A stretch of DNA of 64,000 nucleotides from NCBI GenBank assembly GCA_029953675.1, contig JAMWBK010000001.1, positions 1,364,001-1,428,000 on the forward strand, read 5' to 3'. A program made the position numbers and the translations under genes. The notes beneath the pieces are model-generated. The model was given only the letters and a program-made list of their open reading frames with translations, ran no database searches and had not been told where the DNA came from. Source of the DNA: Rhodosorus marinus CCMP1338. Lineage: Eukaryota; Plantae; Rhodophyta. Positions 481 through 47,439 of the stretch are shown here, in pieces (positions within the stretch are counted from its first letter, which is position 1; every line of letters starts with the position of its first letter).

Positions 481-489
481 GATGTCTGG

Positions 490-5037: not shown

Positions 5038-8000
5038 ATGGGGTGTAGGGTGTTGGTTGTGCTGGTGGTCGCTGCGGTGGCGCTGCAATATGCGGCGGTT
5101 GGAGGAGCGCTGACGCAAGTCGATTTTGAGGATGTTCCTGTCGCAGAGGGTATTCCTGGTCTACCTACTGACTTTGCGTTCATGCCTCCAGGTCAGACGG
5201 AGCGGATTCTGGTCACCGACTTTAGAGGCATGGTCCAAGTTGTTGTGAAGGGAGCGGTCCAGGAGAAATTGTTTCTGGACGAGAGGGTGTCCCAGGAGGA
5301 GCGGGACAATTTCATAGGCTACGGGAATTTTGGGGATAGAGGCATCGCACCAGAGTATCGGGCTGTCGCGGTAGATGCTGACTTTGAAAATTTTCCATAC
5401 GTGTACTTTGCGTACATCTACTATCCCGCAACTGTGGAAGGACCAGTACAAATTCCCATGCAAGGGTTTGTGAAGCGATATAGGGTGAGCCCTGACCTCT
5501 CAGAGGTCGATCGCAGCACGGGGAAGATCATTTTTGGAAACTACGTTAACGGAAACTGTTTGGAGGTTGACGTGAAGGAGGACAACTACTGTGTAACTCG
5601 TCCGCCACATAACATGTCCGGGTTGCTGTCAGACCCGAACGGCAGGCTTTGGATAACCACAGGGGACTCTGCGTTTGTGTACGACTCTGAACGACCCTTG
5701 GCAATGAGGTCTCAGGATCTTGACTCGCTGTACGGAAAAGTGCTGAGGGTAAATCGAAATGGATTAGGTCTGAAATCTAACCCGTATTACAACGGCGACT
5801 ACCGGGCCAACCGATCAAAGGTGATGGCTTTGGGGCTGCGAAACCCATGGAATATTCACTGGGACGACGCGCTCGGAACCGCGTGGGTGTCTGATGTTGG
5901 GGAAGCATCGCTTGAGGAATTTAATCTGGTCCGGCCGCGGTCGAACTTTGAGTGGCCGTGCTTTGAGTCGGAGCTCGATCGCTTTCAGTTTGGCATCTTC
6001 CCCGAATGTGCGGACATGCTCAATGACGTGCCACCATCGTCCGGCGCCGTGTATACGGGGACGAGAGCCGGTCCGGCGTTCAGCTACTCGCACCGGGAGG
6101 GTAGTGCAAATACTGGTGTGGCTCCCGTGAACATTGAGGGATGGCCGGAAACTTTCAACCACGGCGTATATTTCTGCGATTACACTGGAAACTGGATACG
6201 GTACGTCAAAGTAGACGAACCTGGTGACGTGGTGTCGGAGGCTTTAGACTTTGCCACCGAGGTCCTCGGGCCTGTCAACATTAAAACAGGTAGCGACGGA
6301 TGTCTGTACTACCTGGCGCTAACTGCGAGCCAGTTAGGCAAGATCTGCTACAGGGAGGATAATTCACCGGCCGAGGTGGTTGGGATCGTACCCCCGAATG
6401 GGTTCGAGGGGGTGGCGCGGTCGGTCGTGGTTGAGGTGGCCGTAAGCAAGAAGGTGACGGCGGAGACGGCAGTAGCGGCTATAACTGTGGTGGAAACTGT
6501 ATCCGGGGAAGCTGTTGCCGGGTTTGTGGAGCACGATGGGACCAGGAACATTCTTACCTTCGTTCCAAACGACCTACTGAAGGAGGACACGATGTACACG
6601 GTGACGGTTTACGGGTTGATCGACCTGAAAGGTATCTTAATGAAGGGCGAGGAGACGAGTACATTCGTGACGGGTAGTGGTTTCGTGCAATATCTTTCCG
6701 ACCTTCCCCTGACCGTGGATCCAAAGCCGAGTCGAGTTGTGCGTGACATGGCGGAGGACGGCCGGACTCCCATCACAATCCGCGGGAAACGGTTCAGGAA
6801 AGGCTTGAGCTTCAGCCCTGTGGTACTGATAGATGTACAAGTCCCCGATGGATGTACGTCGATCGAAGGCTTCTACGGGATTGACGACATCTCTCGTAGG
6901 ATTGCGAGCGGTGCTGTTATATTTACGATTGCTGTCGACGGCACCTTTATCTACGACTCAACGGTGGATGGTCTCGGCATACCCAGTAGAAAGGTAGACC
7001 CCGAGTTTTACTTCAGGTTGCCGGTGGAGAGTGGAAGCACGGTGACTTTAAGAGGCGACTTTGGCGACCTCGATGACATAGAAGCGATTGAGAATCGTGG
7101 AGTGTGGGCTGATGCTGCCTTCCGCTGCGGGAACTTGGATTCCAGCGCCCCACAGGTCGAGTCGTTTGAGCCTGGTAACGGCGAAACCACATCGACCAAC
7201 CCCTTGATTCAGATCACATTCGACGAGGTCATGAACTATAACACGATCATTCAGGCGGTGAGCATCGAGTCGGTGGATGGGCGTCGTATCCCGTGGCTCC
7301 CGGTGGAGAGTACCAACCCCCAAGTTTTCCTGCTCGCCGTGGAGGACCTAGAGTTCGACGAGACGTACATAGTGAGTATATCCAATGAGGCCACAGACGT
7401 TTCTGGAAACCGATTGGAGGAAGACATGCAGTGGTCATTTACCACGGAGGCGCCGCCAGCAAGTGGAGAGAAGGTCCAACTCGTGGAAGATCTGATACCT
7501 AAGAGCTTAACGGGCGGTGTATCTTTCGATGGATTCCCGAGGAGTTTAATCCCAGGGGTGCAAGTGCACCAGAATGGCCTTGGCATGCAGGCAAACGCCA
7601 AGGTCAGCTACGACCTGAGTGGCCTCTCTTGTACACGGCTGAAGGGGCTCGCGGGTAAAGACGCAGCTGCAGGAGGGGATTCTGGTGCTTGCCGGCTGCG
7701 AATTTTCAGCGGGGTGAGTGAGGAAACATCCCAGAGGCGTTTGAATCGGTACCCCCGCGCAGCTCAGCCGTCCCGGGGGCTAAGTGTTGGTGTGGAGGGG
7801 GATAAATATCTCGAGATTAGACTTTCCGCCGGGGGGGATGGCGGCGTCGCTAGGGATTTTTGCGACATCGTCCGACCTAGAGTGGAATGTGATGGTGTTG
7901 ATATCTACCTGACGTCACTCACGCCGTTGTCTGAGCGAGGGGTAGTTGAAAGGAACAAGAGCGCGTTGGGCTTGCCGCTGCAAATGTTCAGATCCTCAAT

Positions 8001-8838
8001 GACCTTCGAAACTGGGGTTGTTATCCCAGCCGGGGCGGAAGCGACGTATGAAATACCTGGCCGGTGCTCGACCGTGAGCTTCACAGTGGGAGCGGGCAAC
8101 GGAGCGGACTTTGGAGACACCGAGCTGGTGACAACTGTAGACGGAGAGGCGGTTTGCACGGATCAGAACTTTTTCCATCGCGACGGGGCGAGGACGTTCT
8201 CGTGCAGCGTGGAGGGAGGGAAGGAGTTGAGACTTCAGGCCGTCCGAGGGTCCACATCGGGCGCGATCGTCGTGGGCGAGGCACAACTGGATTGTGCCGT
8301 TGGAAGTCGGAAACCTGTGTGCGAGATATCGTCGCTCCCTGTCAGCTTCCGGGTCGGAGACACGATCGAGTACACAGGGAAAGCCTACCGCTTCAACGGA
8401 GAGGAACTGCTTGCGAGCGCTATTAGCTGGGATATCACGCTTGTCCACTGTGAGCCGGAATGTCACGACCATCCAGATACCAGAGTGGAGGGCAGGGAGA
8501 GCGGGAGCTACGACGTTCCCGATCATGGCGACTACTTCTTTATCAAGATTGACTGCATAGTGACGGACATGGGTGAGGTCTCTAAGACGTCGACAAGTGT
8601 GCTTCCGGAGACAGTTTCGGTTACGGTGGAATCAATACCAACAGGGAAGGTCGCCACCGTCGATGGCACAAACGGCGAGACACCGCTCTCGAAAACACTG
8701 GTCGTGGGCTCAACGATCACCGTGGACGCCAGTCCCATCGCTTTCGGCATTTGGTCACACGATAACACCCTCGCCCCAACTTTTAACTACTTTCTTGAGG
8801 ACGACACACCCGCCGTCTTCACCGCCAACTACAACTGA
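5038..8838 (+). CDS. Secreted multidomain PQQ-type glucose/sorbosone dehydrogenase-like protein (GSDH propeller + Ig-like Big_5 + NPCBM-like + Big_5 + NPCBM-like + His/Cys C-terminal module), copy 1
   Basis: Open 3.8-kb ORF; first ATG at 5038 precedes a hydrophobic signal peptide. GSDH motifs HNMSGL..DPNGRLWITTGD, GKVLRV, NPY, GLRNPW, DVG..EEFN, NFEWP. NPCBM-like GKRFRKGLS...EGFYGIDD...VIFTIAVDG. Confidence 0.88.
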   Translation: MGCRVLVVLVVAAVALQYAAVGGALTQVDFEDVPVAEGIPGLPTDFAFMPPGQTERILVTDFRGMVQVVVKGAVQEKLFLDERVSQEERDNFIGYGNFGDRGIAPEYRAVAVDADFENFPYVYFAYIYYPATVEGPVQIPMQGFVKRYRVSPDLSEVDRSTGKIIFGNYVNGNCLEVDVKEDNYCVTRPPHNMSGLLSDPNGRLWITTGDSAFVYDSERPLAMRSQDLDSLYGKVLRVNRNGLGLKSNPYYNGDYRANRSKVMALGLRNPWNIHWDDALGTAWVSDVGEASLEEFNLVRPRSNFEWPCFESELDRFQFGIFPECADMLNDVPPSSGAVYTGTRAGPAFSYSHREGSANTGVAPVNIEGWPETFNHGVYFCDYTGNWIRYVKVDEPGDVVSEALDFATEVLGPVNIKTGSDGCLYYLALTASQLGKICYREDNSPAEVVGIVPPNGFEGVARSVVVEVAVSKKVTAETAVAAITVVETVSGEAVAGFVEHDGTRNILTFVPNDLLKEDTMYTVTVYGLIDLKGILMKGEETSTFVTGSGFVQYLSDLPLTVDPKPSRVVRDMAEDGRTPITIRGKRFRKGLSFSPVVLIDVQVPDGCTSIEGFYGIDDISRRIASGAVIFTIAVDGTFIYDSTVDGLGIPSRKVDPEFYFRLPVESGSTVTLRGDFGDLDDIEAIENRGVWADAAFRCGNLDSSAPQVESFEPGNGETTSTNPLIQITFDEVMNYNTIIQAVSIESVDGRRIPWLPVESTNPQVFLLAVEDLEFDETYIVSISNEATDVSGNRLEEDMQWSFTTEAPPASGEKVQLVEDLIPKSLTGGVSFDGFPRSLIPGVQVHQNGLGMQANAKVSYDLSGLSCTRLKGLAGKDAAAGGDSGACRLRIFSGVSEETSQRRLNRYPRAAQPSRGLSVGVEGDKYLEIRLSAGGDGGVARDFCDIVRPRVECDGVDIYLTSLTPLSERGVVERNKSALGLPLQMFRSSMTFETGVVIPAGAEATYEIPGRCSTVSFTVGAGNGADFGDTELVTTVDGEAVCTDQNFFHRDGARTFSCSVEGGKELRLQAVRGSTSGAIVVGEAQLDCAVGSRKPVCEISSLPVSFRVGDTIEYTGKAYRFNGEELLASAISWDITLVHCEPECHDHPDTRVEGRESGSYDVPDHGDYFFIKIDCIVTDMGEVSKTSTSVLPETVSVTVESIPTGKVATVDGTNGETPLSKTLVVGSTITVDASPIAFGIWSHDNTLAPTFNYFLEDDTPAVFTANYN

Positions 8839-9092
8839 GGGCGCGAGGTCCCAATTCATTCAAGAACTTAATTGGATGAATTGTTGCCATTAAGGCTTGT
8901 GGTTGGATCACTCTTTCGTATTTATATTGATTAATGTGCATAATTCCAATTTACTGGTAAACTATTTGTAGATAGTTGCCCTATGGATGATATGATTGGT
9001 TATCCAAACTGTATTTGGTTTTAGATTTTACAAACAATAAACAATTGACTGCGTGTGTTGGAATGAATGAATTTTTAGGGTTGTCTCTAAAA

Positions 9093-12000
9093 GATCAAAG
9101 GTGATGGCTTTAGGGTTGCGAAACCCATGGAATGTTCACTGGGGCGACGCGCTTGGAACAGCGTGGGTGTCCGATTTTGGGGAACTATCGCTTGAGGAAT
9201 TCAATCTGGTCCGGCCGCGGGCAAATTTTGAGTGGCCGTGCTTTGAGTCGGAGCTCGCTTTCAGTTTGGCATCTTCCCCGAATGTGCGGACATGCTCAGT
9301 GACGTCCCACCATCGTCCGGCGCCGTGTATCCGGGGACGAGAGCCGGTCCAGCGTTCAGCTACTCCCACCGGGAGGGTAGTGCAATTGCTGGTGTGGTTC
9401 CAGTGAACATTGAGGGATGGCCAGAAACTTTCAACCACGGCGTAGTTTTCTGCGACTACACTGGAAACTGGATACGGTACGTCAAAGTAGACAACCACGG
9501 CGTCTATGTCTGCGACTACATCGGAAATTGGATACGGTACGTCAAAGTAGACGAAATTGGTAACGTGGTGTCGGAGGCTCTCGATTTTGCTGCCGAGGGT
9601 CTCGGGCAGGTCAACACTAGAACGGGGGGTGACTAAAGTCTATATTACCCGGCATTCACTGCGAGCCGGCTAGGCATGATCTGTTATAGGGAGGATAAAT
9701 CACGGCCCGAGGTGGTTGGGATCGTACCGCCGAATGGGTCCGCGCTGTGGCGCGCTCTTCCGTGGTTGAGGTGGCGGTAAGCAAGAAGGTGACGGCGGAG
9801 TCGGCATTAGCGGCTACAACCGAAGTGGAGACTGTATCGGGGAAAGCTATTTCTGGGTTTGTGGAGCAGGACGAGACCAGGAACATTCTAACCTTCGTAC
9901 CTCGCGATCTACTGAAGGAGGGCACGATGTACACGGTGAAGGCTTCCGGGTTGATCGACCTGAGAGGTATCTCACTGGCTGGCGACGCTACGAGTATGTT
10001 CGTGACGGGCAGTGGCTTTGTGCGATGTATTTCCGACCTTCCCTTGACCGTGGATCCCACGCCGAGTCAGATTATGCTGAAAATGGCGGAGGATTCCGGG
10101 ACTCCCATCACGATCCGCGGGAAGCGGTTCAGGAAAGGTTTGAGCTTCGGCACTGTGGCGCTGATGGATGTACAAATCCTCAACGGACGTACATCAATTG
10201 AAGGTTAATACGGGATTGACGACATCTCCCGTAGGAGTAGCAACGGTTCTGTTATATTCACGATTGCTGTGGACGGGAGCTTTGTCTACGACCCAACGGT
10301 GGGTGGTCTCGGAATAACCAGCAGGAAGGTCAACCCCGAGTTTTACTTCAGGTTGGCTGTGGAACGTGGAAGTGCTGTCACTATGAGAGGGGACTTTGGA
10401 GACATTAGCCACAAGGAATCCATAGAAAATCGTGGAGTGTGGGCCGACGCTGCCTTCCGCCGTGGAACCTTGGATTCCAGCGCACCAAGGGTTGAATCGC
10501 TCGAGAGACGACAAAAAAACATCGATCGATCCTGTAATTTCATCAAGTTCGACGAGGTCATGAACTACAAAACGATCATTCAGGCGGTGAGCAACGAGTC
10601 CGAGGATGGTCGACGTTTCCCATTGCTTCCGGTGGAGAGTACCGACCCCCAAGCATTCCTGTTCGTTGTGGAGAACCTAGAGTTCGACGAGTCGTGCACT
10701 GTGAATATATCCACAGAGGCCACAGACGTCTCTGGAAACCGTTTGGATCAGGATTTCCAGTGGTCGTTGACGACAGAGTCACTACCAGCGAGCGGCGAGA
10801 TTCTCCAACTTCTGGTAGACCTGATACCCAGAGGTTCCAGTGGTGGTGCCTCGTTCAACGAATTTCCAAGGAAATTGTGGCCAGGAGTAAAAGTAGCAAA
10901 GAACGGTCTTGGAATGCGGGCAGATGCTATGGGCATCTACGAACTGAGTGGTCGAGACTATAGCCGCTTCAAGGGGCGCACGGGCATGGATGCGACGGCC
11001 GGGGGCGATTCCGGTAATTGTCGTCTCCAAATTTTCAGCGGTTCCAGTGCGGAAACGTCCACGAAGCACGTGGACAGGAAGTTTGGTGGAGCTAAGCGGT
11101 CCCAGGGGTTGCTATTTGGCATAGAAACGGGTGGGTATCTCGAAATACAGGTTTCTGGAAGTGGCGATGGCGGTAGGGAGCTCTTGGACATCGCTCAACC
11201 TAGGGTGGAGTGAAATGGTGTGGATGTATACTTGACAAATCTCACGCCGTTGGCTGAACAGGGACAGGTTGAGCGAAGTAGAAGTGCTGCGCAACTTCCA
11301 AAGCAGCTGATCTATACCTCAATGACCTTTGGAGGAGGGCATTCTGCTCCCCGCCGGATCGGAAATGACATACGAAATTCCTGGCAGGTGCTCGACGGTC
11401 AGCTTCACTGTAGGATCGGGCAACGGAACAGATTTTGGGGACACCCAGTTGCTGACACGGTGGACGGGGAGGCAGTTTGTACGGAGCAGAACTTTGTACA
11501 TCGCGACGGTGTGAGGTCTTTTTCGTGCAAAATCGAAGGAGGGGAGGAGCTCAAGCTGGAGGCTGTCAGAGGAGAGACTGGCGGTGCCATTGTCGTGTGG
11601 GCGGCGAACTGGAATGTGCAGTGGGAACTCGAAAACCGGTCTGTGAGATAATCTCGCTCCCCACCATCTTTCGAGTCGGCGACATGTCGAATACAGAGGA
11701 CAAGGCTACCGCTTCAACGGTGAATAGTTTCCTGCGAGTGCTCTTAGTTGGGAACTTACGCTTGTGCACTGTGAGCCGGATTGTCACAACAATCCGCAAG
11801 GCATTGTAGTTGGGAGGAAGAGAGGGACCTACGACGAGCCAAACCAGGGCGATTACTTTCCTTTCAAAATCGACTGCAAGTGAAAGATGGAAGTGAGGTT
11901 TCTAAGCATCGAATTGTGTGTATCCTGATACGGCATAGTGGAATCCATGTCGGTCACGGCATCGCCACCGTCAATGGCAAGAACGGCGAGACCCCGCTCT

Positions 12001-12315
12001 CGAAGACGGTAGTTGTGGGCGCCGTCTTCACCGCGGACCTCGATCCTGTAGCATTCGGAATCTGGTCACATGACAATACTCGCAAATCAACATTTGAGAA
12101 CGCTCTCGAGAATGAAACCCCCATCGTCTTCATCGCAAACTGTAGCTCCGGCAGGGAAGAGAAAGCGGGTTATACCTTCTATTCTTCGATTGGATGTAAT
12201 ATACGCCTATCTTGTAGCATTCGGGATCTGGTCACATGGTAATACTCTCAATTCAAACATTGAGTACTCTCTCGAGAATGAAACCCCCCAGGGTCTTCAT
12301 TTCAAACTATAACTG
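9093..12315 (+). pseudogene. 5'-truncated, frameshifted GSDH-array paralog
   Basis: Collinear with copies 1 and 2 from the RSKVMALGLRNPW motif to the C-terminus. Many frameshifts and stops, a 60-bp internal duplication (~9434-9553) and a duplicated 3' end. Confidence 0.92.
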
Positions 12316-16277: not shown

Positions 16278-19200
16278 ATGGGACGGGAGGTGCTTGTGCT
16301 TTTCATAGTCGCCGTGGTGGCGATGCAGTATAGGGGGGTTGGAGGAGCGCTGACGCAGGTTGATTTTGAGGATGTTTCTGTCGCGGAGGATATTCCCGGT
16401 CTTCCTACGGACTTTGCGTTCATGCCTCCCGGTCAGACGGACCGGATTTTGGTCACCGATTTTAGAGGCATGGTTCAAGTTGTTGTGAAGGGGGCAGTTC
16501 AGAAGAAACTGTTTCTGGATGAGAGGGTGTCCCAGGAGGAGCGGGATAATTTCATAGGCTACGGGAATTTTGGGGATAGAGGTATTGCACCAGAGTATCG
16601 GGCTGTCGCGGTAGATTCTGACTTTGAAAATTTTCCGTTCGTGTACTTTGCGTACATCTACTATCCCGCAACTGTGGAAGGACCAGTACAAATTCCCATG
16701 CAAGGGTTTGTGAAGCGATATAGAGTGAGCCCTGACCTCTCAGAGGTCGATCGCAGCACGGGGAAAATCATTTTTGGAAACTACGTTAACGGAAACTGTT
16801 TGGAGGTTGACGTGAAGGAGGACAACTACTGCGTAACTCGTCCGCCACATAACATGTCCGGGTTGCTGTCAGACCCGAACGGCAGACTTTGGATAACCAC
16901 AGGGGACTCTGCGTTTGTGTACGACTCTGAACGACCCTTGGCAATGAGGTCTCAGGACCTTGACTCGCTATACGGAAAAGTGCTGCGGGTGAGTCGAAAT
17001 GGGTTAGGTCTGAGCTCTAACCCGTACTACAACGGGGACCGGCGGGCAAACCGTTCAAAGGTGATGGCTTTGGGGTTGCGAAACCCATGGAATATTCACT
17101 GGGACGACGCGCTTGGAACAGCGTGGGTGTCTGATGTTGGGGAAGCATCGCTCGAGGAATTCAATCTGGTCCGGCCGCGGGCGAACTTTGAGTGGCCGTG
17201 CTTTGAGTCGGAGCTCGATCGCTTTCAGTTTGGCATCTTCCCCGAATGTGCGGACATGCTCAATGACGTGCCACCATCGTCCGGCGCCGTGTATACAGGG
17301 ACGAGAGCCGGCCCGGCGTTCAGCTACTCGCACCGAGAGGGTACTGCGAATACTGGTGTGGCTCCAGTGAACATTGAGGGATGGCCAGAAACTTTCGACC
17401 ACGGCGTGTATTTTTGTGATTATAGCGGAAATTGGATACGGTACGTCAAAGTAGACGAAGCTGGTAACGTGGTGTCGGAGGCTCTCGATTTTGCCACCGA
17501 GGTTCTCGGGCCGGTCAACATTAGAACGGGAAGTGACGGATGTCTATATTACCTGGCACTCACTGCCAGCCAGCTAGGCAAGATCTGTTACAGGGAGGAC
17601 AATTCACGGCCCGAGGTGGTTGGGATCGTACCGCCGAATGGGTTCGTGGGGGTGGCGCGGTCTGCCGTGGTTGAGGTGGCGGTAAGCAAGAAGGTGACAG
17701 CGGAGACGTCATTAGCGGCTATAACTGTGGTGGAGAGTGTATCGGGGGAAACTGTTGCCGGGTTTGTGGAGCAGGATGAGACCAGGAACATTCTAACCTT
17801 CGTACCGAGCGATCTACTGAAGGGGGACACGATGTACACGGTGACGGTTTCCGGGTTGATCGACCAGAAAGGTATTTCAATGAAGGGTGAGGAGATAGGT
17901 ACGTTTGTGACGGGCAGTGGTTTTTTACGATATCTTTCCGATCTTCCCCTGACCGTGGATCCAAGGCCGAGGCGGGTTGTGCGTGACATGGCGGAGGATG
18001 GCTTGACTCGCATCACAATCCGCGGGAAAAGGTTCAGGAAAGGTTTGAGCTTTAGCCCTGTGGTGCTGATAGATGTACAAGTCCCCAATGGATGTACGTC
18101 GATCGAAGGTTACTACGGGATTGACGACATCTCCCGCAGGATCGCGAGCGGTGCTGTTATATTTACGATTGCTGTGGACGGCACCTTTGTCTACGATTCG
18201 ACGGTGGATGGTCTCGGAATACCTAGTAGAAAGATCGACCCCGAGTTTTACTTCAGGTTGGCGGTGGAGAGTGGCAGCACCGTGACTTTGAGGGGCGACT
18301 TTGGTGACCTCGATGACATAGAAGCGATCGAGAATCGTGGAGTGTGGGCTGACGTTGCCTTCCGCTGCGGGAACTTGGATTCCAGCGCCCCAAAGGTCCA
18401 GTCGTTCGATCCCGGCAACGGCGAAACCACATCGACCAATCCTGTGATTCGTATCAGGTTCGACGAAGTCATGAACTATAACACGATCATTCAGGCGGTG
18501 AGCATCGAGTCAGTGGATGGGCGTCGTATCCCGTGGCTTCCGGTGGAGAATACCAACCCCCAAGTTTTCCTCCTCGCCGTGGAGGACCTAGAGTTCGACG
18601 AGACGTACATCGTGAGTATATCCAAGGAGGCCGCGGACGTTTCTGGGAACAGAATGGAACAAGCCGTGCAGTGGTCGTTTACGACGGAGTCACCACCGGC
18701 GAGTGGCGAGAGGCTCCAACTCGTTGGAGATCTGATACCCACGCGCTTAAACGGCGGTGTCTCCTTCGACGGATTTCCTAGGGAATTGTCACCAGGCGTG
18801 GAAGTATACAAGAATGGACTTGGCATGCAGGCAAATGCCATGGTCAGCTACGACCTGAGTGGTCTAGGGTGCCGTCGCTTAAGAGGGCGGACGGGTAAAG
18901 ACGCGACTGCGGGGGGCGATTCTGGTGCTTGTCGGCTTCAGATTTTCAGCGGTGCGAGTGAGCGTACGTCCAGAATGCGTTTGGATCGGTACCCTCGCGC
19001 TGGCAAACCATCCCGGGGGTTAAATATTGGCGTGGAAGGGGATAGGTATCTGAAGATTAAGGTCTCCGCGGGAGGAGACGATGGACGTGCTAACGACCTT
19101 TGCGATATCGGACGAGCAAGAATGGAGTGCGATGGTGATGATATTTACCTGACACGTCTCACTCCGTTGTCTAAGCGCGGAGTGGTTGAACGGAACAGGA

Positions 19201-20078
19201 GCGCGGTCCGGCTACCATTGCAGCTGCTCAGCTCTTCAATGACCTTCGATGCTGGAGTCGTGATCCCTGCCGGGGCGGAAGTTGCATATGAAATTCCTGG
19301 TCGGTGCTCGACTGTAAGCTTCACTGTAGGAGCGGGTAACGGAGCAGTTTCTGGAGATACCAAGTTGGTGACAACGGTGGACGGGCAGACTGTTTGTACC
19401 GAGCAGAACTTTGTACACCGCGACGGAGCGAGGACGTTTTCGTGCAACGTTGAAGGAGGGGAGGAGCTCAAACTGGAGGCCATCAGAGGAGAGACTGGCG
19501 GCGCCATTGTCGTGGGGGAGGCCGAGCTGGACTGTGCAGTGGGAACTCGAAAACCGGTCTGTGAGATAATCTCGCTCCCCACCAGCTTTCGAGTCGGCGA
19601 CAAGGTCGAATATAGAGGACAAGGCTACCGCTTCAACGGTGAAGAGTTACCTGCGAGTGCTCTCAGCTGGGAACTAACGCTTGTGCACTGTGAGCCGGAG
19701 TGTCATGATCATCCGCAAGACATTGTAGAAGGCAGGAAGAGGGGAAGCTACCACGTCCCTGACCACGGGGACTACTTCTTCGTCAAGATCGACTGCATAG
19801 TGAATGATGGAGGTGAGGTTTCGAGGATGTCGAGGAGCGTTCTTCCAGATACGGCATTGATAACGGTGGAATCCAGGCCTATCGGAAAGCTCGCCACAGT
19901 CGATGGCACAAACGGCGAGACGCCGCTCTCAAAGACAGTGGTTGTGGGCGCGACATTCACCGTGGACGCCGACCCCGTAGCATTCAGAAGCTGGTCACAT
20001 GACAAAACTCTCGGAGCAACCTTTGAATACACTCTTGAAGACCAAAACCCCGTCGTATTTGACGCCAGGTACAACTGA
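16278..20078 (+). CDS. Secreted multidomain GSDH/NPCBM/Ig-like protein, copy 2
   Basis: Intact ORF, ATG at 16278 followed by a signal peptide. Same motifs as copy 1. Confidence 0.88.
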   Translation: MGREVLVLFIVAVVAMQYRGVGGALTQVDFEDVSVAEDIPGLPTDFAFMPPGQTDRILVTDFRGMVQVVVKGAVQKKLFLDERVSQEERDNFIGYGNFGDRGIAPEYRAVAVDSDFENFPFVYFAYIYYPATVEGPVQIPMQGFVKRYRVSPDLSEVDRSTGKIIFGNYVNGNCLEVDVKEDNYCVTRPPHNMSGLLSDPNGRLWITTGDSAFVYDSERPLAMRSQDLDSLYGKVLRVSRNGLGLSSNPYYNGDRRANRSKVMALGLRNPWNIHWDDALGTAWVSDVGEASLEEFNLVRPRANFEWPCFESELDRFQFGIFPECADMLNDVPPSSGAVYTGTRAGPAFSYSHREGTANTGVAPVNIEGWPETFDHGVYFCDYSGNWIRYVKVDEAGNVVSEALDFATEVLGPVNIRTGSDGCLYYLALTASQLGKICYREDNSRPEVVGIVPPNGFVGVARSAVVEVAVSKKVTAETSLAAITVVESVSGETVAGFVEQDETRNILTFVPSDLLKGDTMYTVTVSGLIDQKGISMKGEEIGTFVTGSGFLRYLSDLPLTVDPRPRRVVRDMAEDGLTRITIRGKRFRKGLSFSPVVLIDVQVPNGCTSIEGYYGIDDISRRIASGAVIFTIAVDGTFVYDSTVDGLGIPSRKIDPEFYFRLAVESGSTVTLRGDFGDLDDIEAIENRGVWADVAFRCGNLDSSAPKVQSFDPGNGETTSTNPVIRIRFDEVMNYNTIIQAVSIESVDGRRIPWLPVENTNPQVFLLAVEDLEFDETYIVSISKEAADVSGNRMEQAVQWSFTTESPPASGERLQLVGDLIPTRLNGGVSFDGFPRELSPGVEVYKNGLGMQANAMVSYDLSGLGCRRLRGRTGKDATAGGDSGACRLQIFSGASERTSRMRLDRYPRAGKPSRGLNIGVEGDRYLKIKVSAGGDDGRANDLCDIGRARMECDGDDIYLTRLTPLSKRGVVERNRSAVRLPLQLLSSSMTFDAGVVIPAGAEVAYEIPGRCSTVSFTVGAGNGAVSGDTKLVTTVDGQTVCTEQNFVHRDGARTFSCNVEGGEELKLEAIRGETGGAIVVGEAELDCAVGTRKPVCEIISLPTSFRVGDKVEYRGQGYRFNGEELPASALSWELTLVHCEPECHDHPQDIVEGRKRGSYHVPDHGDYFFVKIDCIVNDGGEVSRMSRSVLPDTALITVESRPIGKLATVDGTNGETPLSKTVVVGATFTVDADPVAFRSWSHDKTLGATFEYTLEDQNPVVFDARYN

Positions 20079-23350: not shown

Positions 23351-26300
23351 ATGGGGAGTGGAGTGTTGCTCTTATTGGTTGTGGCTTCGCTGGCTTGCAA
23401 GCAGGCAGTAGTCGGAGCAGCGCTGACGAGGGTAGATTTTAGGGATCTTCCTGTCGCGGAGGATATTCCTGGACTTCCGACCGACTTTGACTTTTTGCCT
23501 CATGGTCAGACGGACCGGATTTTGGTGTCGGGGTACAGAGGCCTGGTGCAGGTTGTCTTGAAGGGGGTGGTCCAGAAAAAGCTGTTTCTGGACAATACAG
23601 TTCCCCAGGAGGTTCGGGACAAATTCACTGGGCACTCCAAGCTCCTCGATAGAGGCCTTGCACACGAGTATCGAGCAGTCGCGATAGATGCGGACTTTGA
23701 TCATAATCCGTACGTGTACTTTTCGTACGTACTCTACCCGGAAAGGGTAGAAGGAATTGCTCCCCAGGGATTTGTCAGTCGATATCGCGTGAGCGATGAC
23801 CTCACAGAGGCCGTCATCAGCTCAGAGACTGTCATTCTGGGAAGCTACGTGAATGGAGATTGCAGAAACGTAACCTCGAGTGAGGACAATATTTGCATAA
23901 CGCGTGGGGCACATACCATGGGCGGGTTATTCACAGATCCCGAGGGCAACGTGTGGATATCAATAGGAGACTCTGCTTTTGCCGCCGATTATGACCGACC
24001 GAACGCGATGAGATGCCAGGACATTGACTCCCTGTACGGGAAAGTCTTGAGGGTAGACCGGAACGGGAAGGGTCTGCCAGGCAACCCATATTACAACGGC
24101 GATCGGGAGGCGAACCGGTCAAAAGTGATTTCTTCGGGTCTACGCAACCCATGGAACATTCACTGGGACGCCGAGCTCAGCACCGCCTGGCTGGCTGATA
24201 CTGGCGAGTCAACGCTTGAGGAGTTCAACCTGGTTGAATTTGGGGGGAATTACGAGTGGCCTTGCAAGGAGTCCTATCTCGATCGCTTTCAGTTTGGCGT
24301 CTTCCCTGAATGTGCGGACATCCTCGGTGCCGTTCCACCATCGTCCAGACCCGCATATACAGGTAGAAGAGTCAGCGCAGCATTCAGCTACCACCACACG
24401 GAGGGTACTGCTGTGACGGCAGCCCTGAAGGTGAACATCGCGGACTGGCCAGAAGAATTCCAGAACGGTGTGTACTTCAGCGACTATACTGGAAACTGGA
24501 TAAAGTACGTTAAGATAGATCGCACAGGCAAGGTAGTCTCCGAGGCTTTCGACTTTGCCTCCGAGGTACCGGGCCCGGTCAATATCAGAATCGGTAGCAA
24601 TGCGTGTTTGTACTACTTGGCGCTTACTGCGAGTCAGCTGGGTCGGATCTGTTACCACGAGAATAATTCACCTCCGGTCGTCACTGGTCTAGTCCCTCCG
24701 AACGGCTTCAAGGATGCGGCTCGGTCGACCTTGATCGAGGTCGCGGTAAGCAAGAAGGTCACACCTGTATCCGCATGGGTGGCCATTACCGTGGAAGAGA
24801 CGGTATCGGGCAATGTCGTCGCCGGATCTGTGGAGCAGGATGATTTGAGGAATGTGCTTACTTTCGTACCGAACGCGATGCTGAAGGGGGCCACGAGGTA
24901 TACCGTGACCGTTTCTGGGCTTGTGGATTTCAAAGGAAAGCGCATGGTGGGGTCGGAGAGAAGCATATTCAAGACGGGCGAAGGTTTCCTCCAATACGTC
25001 TCCGACCTTCCGTTGGATGTAGAGCCACGTTTGGAAAGGGTTGCCCTGGACACAGCGTATGATCTAGTGACGCCCATCAAGATACGCGGGCGGCGTTTCA
25101 GGAAGGGCCTGAGCTTCACCCCATCGGTTCTGATAGATGTCAAAGTTCCCGAGGGATGTACGTCGGTGGATGGTTACTATGGGATGGAGGATCTTGCCTT
25201 TAGGATTACACGCGGCGCTATTATCTTTACGATCTTTGCGGACGGTACCCTTGTCTACGATTCAACCGTGGATGGTCTCAGAATTCCAAGTAGAAAGATC
25301 GACCCCGAGTACTTCTTTCGGTTGGACGTCAAGAGTGGAAGTACACTGACGTTTAGAGGCGACAAAGGAGACCCGGAAGGACCACTTAACAAGGATAATC
25401 GTGCGGTGTGGGCCGACCTTAGGTTCCGCTGCGGTGATTTAGATGCGACGTCTCCGAGGGTAGAGTCGTTTGAGCCGCACGAGGGCGAGATTACATCGAT
25501 CGACACCATGATTCGCATCACGTTCGACGAGGTCATGAACTTCAACACAATCATTCAGGCTGTAAGCATCAAATCAGCTGCTGGTCGTCGCATCCCCTGG
25601 CTTGCGATTGAACAGAGCAACCCTCAGCTATTCGTGCTCGCGGTAGAGGACCTGGAGTTCGACACAAGGTACGTGGTGAGCATATCTAAAGTAGCTACGG
25701 ACGTTTCCAGGAACCCGTTGGAAGCGGAAGTGGTGTGGTCATTTACGACGGAGTCACCGGCAGCCAGTGGCGAGATTCTCCGATTCGTGCGAGATTTGAT
25801 ACCCCACCGCTCAACAGGTGGCGTATCCTCCGACGGATTTCCGAGAAGTTTCAGTCCTGGAGTTCAAGTATACGACAAAGGTCTTGGTATGCGCGCAAAC
25901 TCCATGGTAAGCTACGACCTGAGCGGTCTAGGTTGTACTCGCTTCAGGGGGCGCACGGGTAGAGACGCGGCCGCGGGAGGCGATGCCGGTAGCTGCCGGC
26001 TTCAAATTTTCAGTGGTCCGAGCGCAAAAACGTCCACAAGGCGTGTGGACAGGTACCACCGAGCAGCTGAGCCTTCCGTTGCACTGGATTTTGACTTGCA
26101 AGGGGATAAGTACCTCGCGTTTAAGGTTTCTGCAGGTGGGGATGGCGGCAGAGCCAGAGACTTTTGTGACATCGCTGGAACGAGGTTGAAATGTGACAAG
26201 GGCAACATTAGAGTTGCAGATCTACCCGCGTTGGCTAGACAGGGAGTTATTGAGCGGAACAGAAGTGCTGCACGACTACCACTTCAGCTGTTTCGCTATT

Positions 26301-28520: not shown

Positions 28521-28529
28521 TGTTTTTTT

Positions 28530-40540: not shown

Positions 40541-40779
40541 ATTGCCCGGCCGGCCTGGGGGTGGCCAGTTCATTCGCCGAACAACTAACTCGACAAAGAC
40601 TGAACGAAAATTTTAATCGGAAACAAACCTATGTATATTGATTGATGGTAGACGATTGCCGAGATATTGACTGTTTTGATACATACCCCATACACCTTGA
40701 AGATTTGTCAGATTTTAACTTTAACTACCATTTATTACCTGTCCAAACTCGGTCAGATTCGCTTTGCAAGAATGAACGG

Positions 40780-41939: not shown

Positions 41940-42392
41940 GAACGAATGGTTTAATCGGAGGCTGAAAAAAAAAACCCCGAGGGGAAAAAAAGACTAAGCG
42001 CGGCGAAGTACTCGCGCCTCCAACATCAAAGCGGCATTCATGCGCCACAGCAGGAAACTTAAGCGGGTAAACAACGATTGAAGACGGTCAGGGCGTTCGC
42101 GGAACAACTCCCGAAGCCAGCGAGAACCAACAGAGTCCATGAACCCAAAGCACTCAATGATCAGGGGTACCAAGCGATGTGCTAGTGCCGAAGCACGAAC
42201 ACCAGGGGAAGACAAAGCCCCCGCGTATGTGATCTCTTTGCGGCGTCTCATGCTGGCGGCGGCAGATCCACGGCGCTCCCCCGCAGCCGGGAGATAACGA
42301 CTAGCTTGAGGGTTAGGAACAGCAAGATCAACGTATGTGGTACGGCGGCTGTCGTCACAGGTGATCACCAGGTCGGCTACACGGCGTTCATC
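41940..42392 (-). mobile_element. Family B 3' fragment (young)
   Basis: Near identical to 27509-27989. 9-bp TSD ATCTGTATC at 41931-41939 and 42393-42401. Confidence 0.93.
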
Positions 42393-44151: not shown

Positions 44152-47100
44152 ATGGGGAAGATTGTCCGGTTTTGGGCTGCCTTGGCCATTCTGGCTGGAC
44201 TCACTCGCGGTTTAGTTTTTGATGCTGAGGACTTGGTTTCTACGGTTGCGGTGGAAGGAGATTTCCAGTCTATCCTGGACTTGGACTGGATACCCGGGGA
44301 TGTGTCGCGGCTCGTATTGTGCGAGAAGCGTGGATTGGTGTGGTTGGTCATCGACGGGGCGCTTCAATCCAAGCCGCTCCTAGATATCTCAGATGAAATC
44401 GTAAACTTTGGGGCGAGGGGTTTAACGGCGTGCATGGTGGACGTCGACTTTGAAAACCACCCATACTTTTACGTGTCCTACGTCGACAACAGGCTAGCAA
44501 AGACAGATTTTCGCACCGGAACTAAAGGCGCCATTATAGCCAAGTACGAGGTGAATAGTGACTTGTCTGAGGCAGTCAACCCGGTTATTCTTATGGGCTC
44601 ACAAGCTCCTCCAGCGTCTGGCTGCAGTGATCCACATATTGCCAAGCGGGACAATATCTGCCTGGAAGATAGGAGCCACAACATGGGGGGTCTTGTGATG
44701 AGCCCCGACGGCAGGATTTTTGTTGGAATTGGTGATGCAGCCAGCGTCTCACAGTTTACAGAACTGCAGATCCGAGCTCAGAACCTAGATTATAAGACTG
44801 GTAAGGTCCACTGCATCACCAGAACGGGCGTGGCGTGTGCGGACAATCCCTTCATTAGGAACGGTAACCGGACTACGAACAGAGCCACTGTGTGGAATTT
44901 CGGAGTTCGCAACCCTTTCAGAATGGGTTGGGACCCAGTGCTCCAAATACCACTAATCGCGAATGTGGGCATGGCAGCCTGGGAGAGCATCTGGCCGGGT
45001 TATCCGGGTTTCAATTATGCATGGCCCTGTAGAGAAGCTCAGCGCACCAATCTAAAAGCAACTTCGTACGAGATTTGCGAGCAGATGAAGCGGGGCGATA
45101 TTGAAGTAGATTCAGATCGCAGCCTCTGGGACTACAGTCACGAATTGGGAGCGGCGGCTACTGGTGTGGTTCGCTTACACTCAGATAAATGGCCCGCCCA
45201 GCTGAGGAACAAGATTGCAGTAGCTGACTATACAAACAGTTGGGTCAAATTAATCGAGGTCGATAAGAATGGCCTCATCGGATCCCACGTAGACTTTATA
45301 TCCGAGGCTGGTGGCCCTGTTCAGCTGAAAGAGGGCCCAGACGGTTGGCTTTACATGGTATCAATCCTTACGCAACAGGTGATCCGGATAGAGTATAGGG
45401 TGAATACAAGCAGACCAGAGGTTGTAAGGGTAGATCCACCCCCGAGTTTTAGGAAGTCAGAGCTCACGTCGGAGATTTCGGTGAAATTTTCGAAGAATAT
45501 TGACTTCTCCACCGTAAGAAAAGAGTCAATGAGGATAGTCAAGACTTCGACGTTGACGAGGGTCCCTGTGGAATATTCTTGGAGACGCGCTACAAACACG
45601 GTGACTGCACGTCCCCTGGAAATTCTAGAGAGTAATATGCGGTACAAGCTTACTGTGACAACGGAGATCACCGACACTGCTGGTCGAAAGCTGCAGAGCG
45701 ATTTTACATCCTTTTTCCGAACTGGCACTGGCTTTGCCCTGCAAGTTTCAGGACTAGAATGGATATCGTCTACCAATGGAAACTCCGAGTATAGAGTTTT
45801 CAGAGACAAACAATTCCCTACTTTTGCTATTGATGTGCCACCGCTTAGGATTCGAGGTACAATATTCGAAGACGGAATTGCCATGATCGCATCCGGCAGC
45901 GTAGAGGTTGAGGTACCGAGGGGTTGCACTAGACTGCAAACATATGCTGGCGTCGACGATGTTGTTCAGCTGTTCGACTCCCCAGGTATCTTCTTCTTCG
46001 TTAGGAAGAGAACCAGCAACGGTGTCAGGACTCTGCACCGAAATGACCTTCCGGTGCTTAGGACGGATCGACCACTCTTCATTGATGTGGATGTCACCGG
46101 TGCTAATAGCGTGATTCTGGAGACGGTAAAGCCCAACGCCACTACCAGAAACAACGCGATTGCGACCTGGGGCTCACCAAAGTTCCGATGCGGAGGATAC
46201 GACGACGACAAAGCTAGCGTAGCGAGCATAATGCCAACCGGCGTCATCGGAATACGCGCTTCAGTCACCGTCAACTTTTCAGAGTCCATGGACATAGCGT
46301 CGACCACCGCTGCGACCCAGATGCTTCTCCCTATCGCTTTGGGAGGCTATATCATTGGCTTCAAAACGGAATTCAGTCGAGATCAGAAAACGATGATTCT
46401 GACTCCAAACCAGCCACTAGATTATGATACTGAGTATACGCTAACGGTCAAGGAGACGGCAATGGACCTCGCGGGCAACGGCCTAAAAAATACGGTCGTG
46501 CGAACTTTTAAGACCGAGGCTGTTGATCTCTCTGGTGACGTGTTTCAGCTTGTGGATGTGAAGACGCAAGCCATCAGAAATCCTCAGAACGTGGTGATCT
46601 GGCGGGAAGGTCATGAAATGAGGATAGAAGCTGGCACCGATGTTGACTACCTAGTCCCTGGAAAGTGTGGATTGTTGAACCTCTCTGTGACGTCCAAGTG
46701 GGGCCCTGTCTGGGTTTCCGTTCGAGATTCAGCTGGAGATCGTATTTGTGGAACCGGTCGCATCCCTGAGAACAAGAGCGTGGACCTCTCTTGCGATATC
46801 TCAGCGCAGGCTTGGATAAGGCTCGTGATTCGGGGGTCTGGTAGAGCGCACATCTACAGATCCACCATCGACTGCAGGTCGGGCTCGCTGAACCCGCGAT
46901 GTGAGTTTGGAGACGAAATTCCGAATGAGTTCAGGATCGGGGATGTCGTGAGATTCAGCGCCAAATGCTACGACTACAAGGGTGCTTTGATCAATAGGCG
47001 TGCGCTCTTTTGGATTGTTTCCCTTATTCACTGTCAGACTATATGCCACAGGCATGAGGAATTGACTGAAGAGGGAGTTTCTGGGGGGATTTATGAGGTG

Positions 47101-47439
47101 CCAGACCATGGAGACTTCTTCTTTCTGGAGATTCAGGTATTTGCGGAGAGTGATGGGAAGCGTGGCGCCTCCACTGTTCAAATACGCCCGTCTACTGCTT
47201 CAGTGACTGTCACCACGATGCCGCCTGGTTTAACAGTATCTTCCGATTCATTATCTGGACCATCTCCACTCCGTTCTATCACTGTGGTGGGCTCTAATTT
47301 CACAATCAACGCTGTGGAAAGAGGTCGCGGTAAACGATTCGCTTTTTGGGATGATGACAAGAAGCTCGGACCCGCTCGCTCCTTGCTCTTCAACACGAAA
47401 GGAAGTCGTACCTACAACGCAGTCTACCATGATGGGTGA
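44152..47439 (+). CDS. Divergent secreted GSDH/Big_5/NPCBM/Big_5 protein, copy 4
   Basis: ATG at 44152 followed by signal peptide MGKIVRFWAALAILAGLTRG. Motifs SHNMGGLVMSPDGRIFVGIGD, GVRNPFR, NYAWP, DLAGNGL, HCQTICHRH..PDHGD. Confidence 0.87.
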   Translation: MGKIVRFWAALAILAGLTRGLVFDAEDLVSTVAVEGDFQSILDLDWIPGDVSRLVLCEKRGLVWLVIDGALQSKPLLDISDEIVNFGARGLTACMVDVDFENHPYFYVSYVDNRLAKTDFRTGTKGAIIAKYEVNSDLSEAVNPVILMGSQAPPASGCSDPHIAKRDNICLEDRSHNMGGLVMSPDGRIFVGIGDAASVSQFTELQIRAQNLDYKTGKVHCITRTGVACADNPFIRNGNRTTNRATVWNFGVRNPFRMGWDPVLQIPLIANVGMAAWESIWPGYPGFNYAWPCREAQRTNLKATSYEICEQMKRGDIEVDSDRSLWDYSHELGAAATGVVRLHSDKWPAQLRNKIAVADYTNSWVKLIEVDKNGLIGSHVDFISEAGGPVQLKEGPDGWLYMVSILTQQVIRIEYRVNTSRPEVVRVDPPPSFRKSELTSEISVKFSKNIDFSTVRKESMRIVKTSTLTRVPVEYSWRRATNTVTARPLEILESNMRYKLTVTTEITDTAGRKLQSDFTSFFRTGTGFALQVSGLEWISSTNGNSEYRVFRDKQFPTFAIDVPPLRIRGTIFEDGIAMIASGSVEVEVPRGCTRLQTYAGVDDVVQLFDSPGIFFFVRKRTSNGVRTLHRNDLPVLRTDRPLFIDVDVTGANSVILETVKPNATTRNNAIATWGSPKFRCGGYDDDKASVASIMPTGVIGIRASVTVNFSESMDIASTTAATQMLLPIALGGYIIGFKTEFSRDQKTMILTPNQPLDYDTEYTLTVKETAMDLAGNGLKNTVVRTFKTEAVDLSGDVFQLVDVKTQAIRNPQNVVIWREGHEMRIEAGTDVDYLVPGKCGLLNLSVTSKWGPVWVSVRDSAGDRICGTGRIPENKSVDLSCDISAQAWIRLVIRGSGRAHIYRSTIDCRSGSLNPRCEFGDEIPNEFRIGDVVRFSAKCYDYKGALINRRALFWIVSLIHCQTICHRHEELTEEGVSGGIYEVPDHGDFFFLEIQVFAESDGKRGASTVQIRPSTASVTVTTMPPGLTVSSDSLSGPSPLRSITVVGSNFTINAVERGRGKRFAFWDDDKKLGPARSLLFNTKGSRTYNAVYHDG

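Follow-up and report, generated by a model that had tools for sequence, protein, structure and literature searches.

Long, multi-domain genes encoding proteins built around a GSDH-type propeller are arrayed in the nuclear DNA of Rhodosorus marinus CCMP1338, a red alga. The window analysed here is a repeat-rich stretch of 64,000 nucleotides from contig JAMWBK010000001.1 of assembly GCA_029953675.1, and its features are collected in Table 1. A preliminary description of this DNA had reported four intact intronless genes and one pseudogene, and the open reading frames and the damaged copy were found where it had placed them. Neighbouring genes are separated by 3-17 kb. The reading frame of g4 is open from 43840 to 47439, and alignment with its paralogues sets the start at the ATG given in the table. 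In pairwise comparisons of amino acid sequence, g2 is 85.5% identical to g1, g3 is 65% identical and g4 is 29% identical, identifying the last as a deep paralogue. The pseudogene starts 250 bp past the g1 stop at codon ~257, with codons 1-256 missing, and its DNA is nearest to g1 and g2 (75-92% identical). Two or more frameshifts and six or more in-frame stops interrupt it, 20 amino acids are duplicated internally, and its His motif is destroyed. The features of the array are not a chance pattern. The exact 1095-aa product of g4 is present in the GenBank annotation of the assembly, and the public annotation of R. marinus has no products for g1 and g3; it may omit or mis-model g1-g3.

Table 1. 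Features of the window and members of the gene family (nucleotide positions are counted from the first letter of the window; aa positions refer to the g1 product).
Feature	Position	Strand	Description
g1	5038..8838	+	Intact intronless gene, 1266 aa; open reading frame from first ATG
g1, propeller part	aa ~21-452; aa ~441-545		Signal-peptide-like N-terminus, then GSDH propeller; Big_5
g1, middle	aa ~566-695; aa ~705-803; aa ~842-949; aa ~955-1072		NPCBM; Big_5; NPCBM; NPCBM
g1, C-terminal part	motif aa 1131-1163 (nt 8428-8526)		His-cluster Ig domain, then B-repeat/PEGA-like beta-sandwich
Pseudogene copy	9086..12288	+	5'-truncated, frameshifted
g2	16278..20078	+	Intact intronless gene, 1266 aa
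g3	23351..27142	+	Intact intronless gene, 1263 aa
g4	44152..47439	+	Intact intronless gene, 1095 aa; deep paralogue
Retroelement, partial copies	12408-13541; ~34241-36232; ~48220-51200		First of these inverted, directly after the pseudogene
SRP RNA gene	51648..51941	+	Eukaryotic (plant-type); 4 kb downstream of g4
Retroelement, most complete copy	56610..61562	+	RVT_1 open reading frame 58444-60450
Further R. marinus paralogues			NDN08_005580/005582 (tandem pair, same contig); 006430; 002108/002109/002138; 007704; 004412; 007382 (partial)

The domains listed in the preliminary description are borne out by Pfam matches above their thresholds. The GSDH domain (PF07995) scores 66-90 bits in g1-g4 against a cut-off of 25, two copies of Big_5 (PF13205) exceed the gathering score, and NPCBM (PF08305) is found in three copies in g1-g3 (124-131 bits) and in one copy in g4 (54 bits), which is without the middle NPCBM. 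The NPCBM modules are assigned by family to the CBM51-type, galactose-binding class. The C-terminal part consists of a pair of Ig-like domains. The first carries the motif W..L.HC-x3-CH-x-H...PDH (aa 954-986 in g4), so the C-terminal module described earlier is present, with its cysteines separated by three residues and not by two. The invariant W/H/H/H/D/H cluster of this domain looks like a metal site. Separately, we note that this conserved four-His/Asp Ig domain is without a solved structural relative. In the Pfam scan of g1-g4, no cytochrome or other recognized electron-acceptor domain was detected.

Each of the four proteins is probably secreted. The signal peptides proposed earlier correspond to a strongly hydrophobic N-terminal stretch of 12 residues in every intact gene (Kyte-Doolittle 2.1-3.5), hydrophobicity being the sole basis on which they were judged. 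A hydrophobicity scan found no further membrane-span-like segment or C-terminal anchor in g1-g4.

Genes of bacterial domain architecture that lack introns, with a G + C content (51-55%) somewhat higher than that of some flanks, could be taken to reflect bacterial contamination or a chimeric assembly at this locus. The surroundings of the genes argue strongly against this. The contig is a 3.8-Mb pseudo-chromosome assembled from long reads, and over 42 kb the genes are interleaved with eukaryotic retroelements and repeats, copies of which match those on a second R. marinus contig at 97-99% identity. Just past g4 lies an SRP RNA gene of eukaryotic type, paralogues occur on four other megabase contigs, and bacterial-type promoter-like and terminator-like sites appear at chance frequency only. 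Gene spacing is wide, and GC3 in g1-g4 (0.55-0.63) fits the neighbouring host genes (0.48-0.68) and not a bacterial relative (0.87). Unless the public assembly is grossly in error, contamination or chimerism is thus refuted, and we give it next to no credence. The window is nuclear DNA of R. marinus CCMP1338. The exact match of g4 to the R. marinus assembly, the SRP RNA gene, the reverse-transcriptase reading frame and the shared repeats all uphold the eukaryotic host that had been proposed from the DNA itself.

The family extends well beyond the window. There are at least ~12 paralogues in R. marinus, spread over five contigs, in agreement with the amplification claimed earlier. Relatives outside Rhodosorus were found in Bangiopsis and in one further sequencing sample, and eukaryotic members only in the Stylonematophyceae. 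Strains of R. marinus, and also Bangiopsis sp. CCMP1999, have MMETSP transcripts that encode homologues. None of the transcripts seen among these MMETSP homologues came from g1-g3 themselves, the nearest transcript-encoded homologue of g1 and g3 being P0001, which is just 71% identical to g1. Comparisons with g1 gave Ka/Ks values of 0.17 for g2 and 0.21 for g3, and ratios of about 0.2 indicate that the family is under purifying selection.

The origin of these genes was addressed by neighbour-joining (distance-based) trees of the propeller domain, into which HHIP, HIPL and AA12 sequences were not included. In a tree of 64 sequences, the algal proteins formed one clade nested among bacterial sequences (bootstrap 99/100), and the same clade lay within bacteria in a tree of 111 sequences selected from the results of an exhaustive HMMER search (bootstrap 70/70). 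That search covered 1.84 billion representatives and, after the algal proteins, the relatives that were checked or named were all bacterial. The commonest sister sequence of the algal clade is located on a densely packed bacterial contig; the best sister has 50-58% support, and no donor lineage is placed by these trees.

The bacterial relatives are multi-domain proteins named ‘PQQ-dependent sugar dehydrogenase’ from Chloroflexota, Acidobacteriota (Bryobacterales), Myxococcota, Actinomycetota (Nocardioides), and CPR bacteria. They combine GSDH with PKD, Big, PA14, NPCBM, and the His-cluster Ig domain. This last module was found in 16 bacterial GSDH proteins, with the Cys-pair variant in P0002, P0003, P0005, and P0096. 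They share with the algal proteins a propeller subfamily (~30-35% identity) with the motifs WPC-x-E and Y-x-H and with G-P-V in place of an arginine pair, as well as the C-terminal His-cluster Ig domain and B-repeat. Amino acids 978-1246 of g1 are collinear with 479-754 of P0005 through NPCBM, His-Ig and B-repeat, and the P0005 gene likewise sits in a tandem pair. All modules of the algal proteins occur in bacterial relatives, as expected from the bacterial architecture ascribed to them earlier. Unlike the bacterial proteins, the algal ones form a clade of their own, have eukaryotic-style signal peptides, and are encoded by nuclear genes scattered among retroelements. Their middle region is fixed as Big_5-NPCBM-Big_5-NPCBM(-NPCBM), and SLH, PKD, PA14 and nuclease domains are absent.

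The nesting of the algal clade within bacteria, the collinearity with P0005 and a Ka/Ks of about 0.2 together argue that the family was acquired horizontally from bacteria and then amplified under purifying selection, a reading that we regard as well supported; the monophyly of the algal clade also supports a single acquisition. Horizontal acquisition had been put forward before, and the phylogeny bears it out. The competing view is that the genes were inherited vertically from an ancient gene of the GSDH, HHIP or HIPL type in eukaryotes and that their likeness to bacterial genes is superficial. It draws on the existence of GSDH-fold proteins in animals (HHIP), plants, fungi (AA12), and brown algae, and on trees without HHIP and HIPL sequences. 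It has to contend with the bacterial identity of all checked or named relatives beyond the algal proteins in the HMMER search, with NPCBM, Big_5 and His-Ig modules whose presence and arrangement are held in common with bacterial proteins, and with the restriction of the family, among eukaryotes, to Stylonematophyceae. EGF and Frizzled domains and an anchor are absent, and the profile E-value is weaker for HHIP than for Asd by 19 orders of magnitude. In this respect, it is also significant that the genes are intronless, with reading frames unbroken over 3.3-3.8 kb, in a genome that its authors describe as intron-rich (24,821 introns in 8,392 genes; PMC10250338). Vertical descent was already disfavoured and appears very improbable.

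The structure predicted for the propeller places it close to known enzymes. An AlphaFold model of the g4 propeller (pLDDT 90.2, pTM 0.89) was compared with the PDB using Foldseek, and the top 19 matches were all sGDH, Asd, 3A9G, 7CDY, 3DAS or 2ISM, with E-values of about 1e-21 to 1e-18. HHIP and AA12 ranked below the bacterial enzymes, AA12 appearing 36th and lower (E 7e-11). A PDB profile search with the family returned Asd (2G8S) at E 6e-36, sGDH at 1e-30 and HHIP at 2e-17; AA12 structures were absent from its matches at E <= 0.01. Both searches sustain the earlier distinction from HHIP, the propeller being nearer to bacterial Asd and sGDH than to HHIP or AA12. Like sGDH of A. calcoaceticus (1C9U) and Asd/YliI of E. 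coli (2G8S), it is six-bladed (target TM-score up to 0.86) and has the NYGWP and PDG...LY blade motifs. Identity to these enzymes is only 16-19%, and they are periplasmic, single-domain proteins, unlike the algal ones with their ~650-850 extra residues of accessory domains.

The two active-site motifs named in the preliminary description were found in g1-g4. The equivalent of the catalytic sGDH His144 (H-N/T-M-x-G) is at aa 191, 191, 188, and 176 in g1-g4, respectively, and the G-L/V-R-N-P motif has its arginine at aa 268, 268, 265, and 253; its Arg-Asn pair is equivalent to Arg228/Asn229 in sGDH, which face the quinone oxygens of PQQ. Catalytic roles for this histidine and the Arg-Asn pair have been described in sGDH and AA12 (PMC6881789, PMC6881810). 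Among the algal copies, only P0067 departs from the His and Arg-Asn residues, which nearly all bacterial relatives retain as well, at ~30% overall identity. No member of the clade, whether from bacteria or algae, has the last-blade arginine pair that contacts the PQQ carboxylates (sGDH Arg406/Arg408; R-I-R in Asd), and G-P-V-(N/Q/D) stands in its place in all algal copies and the bacterial clade relatives. A conserved Y-x-H specific to the clade is found in the pocket-forming region. The NCBIfam model TIGR03606 (glucose/sorbosone family PQQ-dependent dehydrogenase), which is specific for the sGDH subfamily and has a cut-off of 434.55 bits, gave scores of only 31 and 19, and the propeller shows weak similarity to Vgb lyase and DUF7133 propellers.

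PQQ-dependent sugar oxidation by these proteins, as proposed earlier, is not established. The same bacterial transfer and expansion could have given rise to proteins that are not PQQ quinoproteins. The propeller might then be a matrix-binding or structural module, as in HHIP, or carry out some other polysaccharide reaction that is cofactor-independent or metal-dependent, and the main function might come from the carbohydrate-binding modules and the His-cluster domain. HHIP retains the propeller and the His with no reported use of PQQ (PMC4133262), and the fold and this residue are therefore no proof of catalysis. The missing carboxylate arginines, the very low score on the equivalog-type sGDH model and the faint likeness to Vgb lyase and DUF7133 propellers point the same way, as does the literature searched, where no characterized member of the clade and no paper on the family was found. 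Against this, the His and Arg-Asn residues persist, P0067 excepted among algal copies, in proteins that have otherwise diverged to ~30% identity. The clade has its own Y-x-H in the pocket region, and all of the closest solved structures belong to PQQ enzymes. AA12 enzymes hold PQQ with other carboxylate ligands, histidines included, so loss of the arginine pair is not decisive. On balance, we consider a function without PQQ unlikely, though with an appreciable chance of being correct.

Eukaryotic proteins of the same fold offer further comparisons. The fungal AA12 enzymes (CcPDH, 6JWF; TrAA12, 6H7T) are likewise secreted, are often fused to a carbohydrate-binding module, and keep the His and Arg-Asx pair with a non-canonical set of carboxylate ligands for PQQ. 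They are far more distant from the algal propeller than the bacterial enzymes are (Foldseek E about 1e-10 vs 1e-21) and form a separate lineage. Their partners are an AA8 cytochrome and CBM1, neither of which was found by Pfam in g1-g4, where NPCBM, Big_5 and His-Ig occur instead. HHIP, together with HHIPL and plant HIPL, is also an extracellular eukaryotic GSDH-fold propeller with the His. It is a ligand-binding protein and no enzyme, and its alignment is limited to the first ~230 profile positions. GSDH-type transfers into eukaryotes already have precedents, and ‘GDH’ genes in centipedes are reported as such. A gene for a PQQ-dependent sugar dehydrogenase is reported in brown algae, with PQQ use unproven in both groups. 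The earlier statement that eukaryotic PQQ-type enzymes are confined to AA12 was thus too narrow. The descriptions of the centipede and brown-algal genes available to us set them apart from those of R. marinus, mentioning no NPCBM, Big_5, His-Ig or comparable expansion in copy number.

The best explanation of these observations, and one that we consider probable, is a single bacterial acquisition followed by expansion, secretion and a proposed PQQ-type oxidation of sugars. Its evolutionary and architectural parts are shown by the comparisons presented here. A complete multi-domain gene passed once from a bacterium to an ancestor among the stylonematophycean red algae, and the family then grew by tandem and dispersed duplication in the nuclear genome of R. 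marinus, being kept by purifying selection and, judging by homologue transcripts, transcribed. The resulting proteins join an sGDH/Asd-fold propeller to Big_5 spacers, one to three NPCBM modules and a C-terminal Ig-like pair. Secretion, substrate and cofactor, like any role for the His cluster, are matters on which we can only infer. In the likeliest mechanism, the NPCBM modules may anchor a secreted enzyme on galactan-rich extracellular polysaccharide, where the propeller would act on sugars, free or at a reducing end, and oxidize them at the anomeric carbon to give the lactone. The conserved His would act as general base, and the Arg-Asn pair would polarize a quinone cofactor, PQQ with a metal ion. 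The alga would have to obtain PQQ from associated bacteria. PQQ enzymes are found in organisms that do not make PQQ, such as E. coli and CPR bacteria, and dependence on bacterial PQQ is a reasonable, if purely inferential, analogy. A more ambitious picture would have a large secreted quinoprotein family in a photosynthetic eukaryote running on a cofactor that the alga cannot make, with PQQ as a vitamin-like currency exchanged with its bacteria. Galactan-type extracellular polysaccharide or released sugars would be oxidized, and the His/Asp Ig domain would serve as a novel module for metal binding or electron transfer in place of the cytochrome partner that other PQQ dehydrogenases have. We view that picture as rather doubtful.

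Even without PQQ, the array provides a clear example of an entire multi-domain gene passing from bacteria into the nucleus of a red alga and reaching a dozen or more copies. It also draws attention to a widespread, uncharacterized subfamily in bacteria whose members routinely receive the name ‘PQQ-dependent sugar dehydrogenase’. They bear the conserved His-cluster Ig domain but not the canonical arginines for the PQQ carboxylates. Should the algal proteins prove to be active quinoproteins, algae would gain their first PQQ-type sugar oxidoreductases, and eukaryotes only their second lineage with experimental support, fungal AA12 being the other. The proteins would also tie the extracellular carbohydrate chemistry of an alga to a cofactor supplied by bacteria.

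Four intact, intronless genes (g1 to g4) and a dead fifth copy lie on the plus strand of the window. The open reading frames, the domains, the sequence motifs, which are present at their expected places in all four genes, and the damaged copy were all found, thereby confirming the observation made in the preliminary description; the finding is real, was correctly described and is no artefact. In g1, g2 and g3, the Pfam domains above the curated thresholds are GSDH (PF07995), Big_5 twice and NPCBM three times; in g4 NPCBM passes its threshold once. A piecewise scan of g1 gave the order GSDH, Big_5, NPCBM, Big_5, NPCBM, NPCBM and a C-terminal module, in which an Ig domain with a histidine cluster precedes a B-repeat/PEGA-like sandwich. 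The N-termini of g1 to g4 are strongly hydrophobic, and hydrophobicity revealed no membrane span or anchor elsewhere in them. The GenBank annotation carries exactly the 1095-aa product of g4. In an exact product look-up of the public gene collection, g1 (in two start variants) and g3 were not on record; g4, from the same contig, is. In GCA_029953675.1 the first two may lack annotation or have faulty gene models.

The dead copy begins at about codon 257, 250 bp past the stop of g1, and has acquired at least two frame changes and at least six stop codons; its His motif is destroyed. It also contains a 20-aa tandem duplication (HGVVFCDYTGNWIRYVKVDN / HGVYVCDYIGNWIRYVKVDE; window 9460-9580) that is absent from the intact copies, and a retroelement fragment abuts its 3' end. 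Among the other open reading frames of at least 250 aa in the window, none matched Pfam except a reverse transcriptase (RVT_1) and pieces of the pseudogene, and no tRNA genes were found.

Repeats, and genes and homologues of the GSDH-type propeller family (window coordinates unless a contig is named)
Feature	Position	Strand	Remarks
g1	5038-8838	+	ORF from first ATG, 1266 aa
g2	16278-20078	+	ORF from first ATG, 1266 aa
g3	23351-27142	+	ORF from first ATG, 1263 aa
g4	ORF 43840-47439, true start ATG 44152	+	1095 aa; start set by paralogue alignment
Pseudogene	9086-12288	+	tblastn of g1 against the window
Eukaryotic SRP RNA gene	51648-51941	+	full-length; Rfam Plant_SRP, 115.7 bits
Retroelement copy	56610-61562		RVT_1 ORF and two flanking ORFs
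Retroelement, partial copies	~48220-51200, ~34241-36232, 12408-13541 (inverted)
Retroelement family outside the window	R. marinus contig 8 (L004), 16000-22750
Short repeat family	184-480, 27509-27994, 28186-28561, 39995-40543, 40777-41225, 41936-42394, 51285-51552, 52730-53274	both	~300-480 bp
Short repeat family outside the window	R. marinus contig 8 (L004), ~8000-8340 and 22746-23288
NDN08_005580, NDN08_005582	same contig, 1 Mb from window genes		tandem pair, same architecture
NDN08_006430	another contig		paralogue, 82% identical to g4
NDN08_002108, NDN08_002109, NDN08_002138	R. marinus		same architecture
NDN08_007704, NDN08_004412	R. marinus		same architecture
NDN08_007382	R. marinus		partial copy, 351 aa
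Intronless homologue	Logan SRR22824290 contig of 7.2 kb (L007), 324-4100		1258 aa, algal architecture

Genes of bacterial appearance in a eukaryotic assembly could reflect contamination or a chimeric contig, and the surrounding DNA bears directly on this possibility. The long-read nuclear assembly of CCMP1338 (Stylonematophyceae, Rhodophyta) comprises 31.2 Mb and 8,392 genes, in which 24,821 introns are recorded; the authors of the assembly term the nuclear genes of R. marinus intron-rich (PMC10250338). The g4 product is exactly encoded on JAMWBK010000001.1, a 3.8-Mb contig of this assembly. The window contains a eukaryotic SRP RNA gene, and interspersed repeats, with several copies inside the window, form a mosaic between the genes; copies of the retroelement and of the short repeat family are 97-99% identical to others beside a paralogue on JAMWBK010000008.1. 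GC3 of the genes is 0.55-0.63, like that of neighbouring host genes, compared with 0.87 in a bacterial relative. The SRP RNA, the shared repeats, the megabase contig and the host-like GC3 all point to R. marinus, and for practical purposes contamination and chimerism are excluded. A scan around g1 for bacterial promoters and terminators found sites no more common than expected by chance.

Within the window, and against another contig of R. marinus, copies of the retroelement are 97-99% identical, suggesting that this family was active recently; the two frames flanking its reverse transcriptase have no Pfam match. The short repeat family, some copies of which are 99% identical, looks SINE- or MITE-like, and copies of it lie on either side of the SRP RNA gene (51285-51552 and 52730-53274).

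Relatives were sought by word-indexed searches and by scanning 1.84 billion representatives exhaustively with HMMER, with g4 alone as the query. Beyond these algae, all relatives with an organism name or a checked genomic context are bacterial. They are ∼30-35% identical over the propeller, and those with names belong to Chloroflexota, Bryobacterales, Hyalangium, Nocardioides, Planctomycetes and CPR bacteria. The propeller domain was placed in neighbour-joining trees with E. coli YliI as the root and without HHIP, HIPL or AA12 sequences. There all algal proteins fall together in a single clade within the bacterial sequences, in 99/100 bootstraps with 64 sequences and in 70/70 for a set of 111 taken from the exhaustive search; the distance method and this sampling are the chief technical limitation. 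No donor lineage emerged from these trees, in which sister groups of the algal clade reach 50-58% bootstrap at best; the commonest sister sequence sits on a densely packed bacterial contig.

The domain architecture shared with bacteria provides evidence for a bacterial origin that is independent of the trees. The C-terminal W..H[H/C]..H.H...DH module is present in 16 bacterial GSDH proteins, and the Cys-pair variant of its motif found in the alga also occurs in four bacterial multi-domain relatives (P0002, P0003, P0005 and P0096). Residues 978-1246 of g1 are collinear with residues 479-754 of P0005 over a stretch that takes in NPCBM, His-Ig and B-repeat domains. Furthermore, the algal genes run for 3.3-3.8 kb without a break in the reading frame, in a genome rich in introns. 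Together, the nested trees, bacterial architecture and intron-free frames support a single ancient transfer, in which a whole multi-domain bacterial gene would have entered the stylonematophycean lineage and then duplicated. The gene for P0005 is one of a pair of tandem GSDH, NPCBM and SLH genes on a metagenome contig (L002, Ga0272426_1003091, 1703-9193), and beside them are an ArsR-type regulator and an ABC exporter; genes of this type are therefore duplicated in tandem in bacteria too.

In R. marinus the family spans five contigs, with at least ∼12 full-length genes and additional fragments. Orthology of g4 and NDN08_006430, which are 82% identical, was rejected when the exact look-up placed g4 in the same assembly, and the two are thus paralogues. 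Ka/Ks among paralogues is 0.17-0.21, and the copies are therefore maintained by selection. Homologues derived from MMETSP transcripts are found in R. marinus strains, where one form of 445 aa consists of the propeller only, and in Bangiopsis sp. CCMP1999, another stylonematophycean. The homologue on the SRR22824290 contig, with the C-terminal motif HHC-x4-CH-x-H, clusters with Bangiopsis within the algal clade, and its source is probably another stylonematophycean. In databases the algal proteins are named hypothetical or ‘GH98 carbohydrate-binding module domain-containing’.

The C-terminal module is modelled with confidence (pLDDT 85.5) as two tandem Ig-like sandwiches, and its invariant W, H, H, H, D and H cluster round one hairpin, for which a putative metal site is the obvious guess. 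It has no match among PDB sequences, only weak hints in Pfam (Big_7, Flg_new_2, PEGA) and, with Foldseek, only generic tandem Ig matches (pilins and macroglobulins, TM 0.3-0.4), and so no function can be assigned to it. A search with a profile of the module yielded short gene fragments for the most part, along with a few bacterial proteins of ∼200 aa in which the module stands alone, and no new informative partner domains. Four stand-alone proteins of ∼200-260 aa combining the His-cluster Ig and B-repeat (P0157, P0165, P0168 and P0172) are encoded on bacterial contigs of 44-250 kb, and this combination is probably an independent functional unit.

AlphaFold modelled the g4 propeller with confidence (pLDDT 90.2), and the best PDB matches of the model are PQQ enzymes (A. 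calcoaceticus sGDH, E. coli Asd, 3A9G, 7CDY, 3DAS and 2ISM), followed by HHIP, with fungal AA12 well behind. A profile of the algal proteins and their bacterial relatives likewise matched Asd (E 6e-36) and sGDH (1e-30) ahead of HHIP (2e-17). Residues in contact with PQQ were taken from published comparisons of AA12 with sGDH (PMC6881789, PMC6881810), in which, of the catalytic elements of the fold, the His and the Arg-Asn pair are the best conserved. His144 and Arg228/Asn229 of sGDH align to conserved residues in all four genes. Where sGDH has Arg406/Arg408 and Asd has R-I-R, the last-blade arginines that bind the PQQ carboxylates, every member of the clade, algal or bacterial, has G-P-V. The clade has its own conserved motifs, Y-x-H and WPC-x-E; the sGDH-specific NCBIfam model scores far under its threshold. 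AA12 enzymes hold PQQ by a different set of ligands that includes histidines (PMC6881789, PMC6881810), and HHIP keeps the fold and the His yet is not reported to use PQQ (PMC4133262). For these reasons PQQ dependence of the clade is plausible rather than settled, and we consider the chances roughly evenly balanced.

Within the GSDH superfamily of Pfam, the algal proteins fall in an uncharacterised bacterial subfamily; they are not members of AA12, nor are they HHIP-like. Earlier reports of GSDH-type genes in eukaryotes concern brown algae and centipedes, in the latter as horizontal transfers; no paper was found on the present genes in Rhodosorus or any other red alga. PQQ enzymes that rely on external PQQ are known in E. 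coli and CPR bacteria. The enzymology and PQQ cross-feeding are hypotheses in R. marinus, with one specific reason for doubt at the sequence level. The proposal that the alga acquired these genes horizontally and amplified them is well supported by the nested trees, the bacterial architecture and the size of the family.
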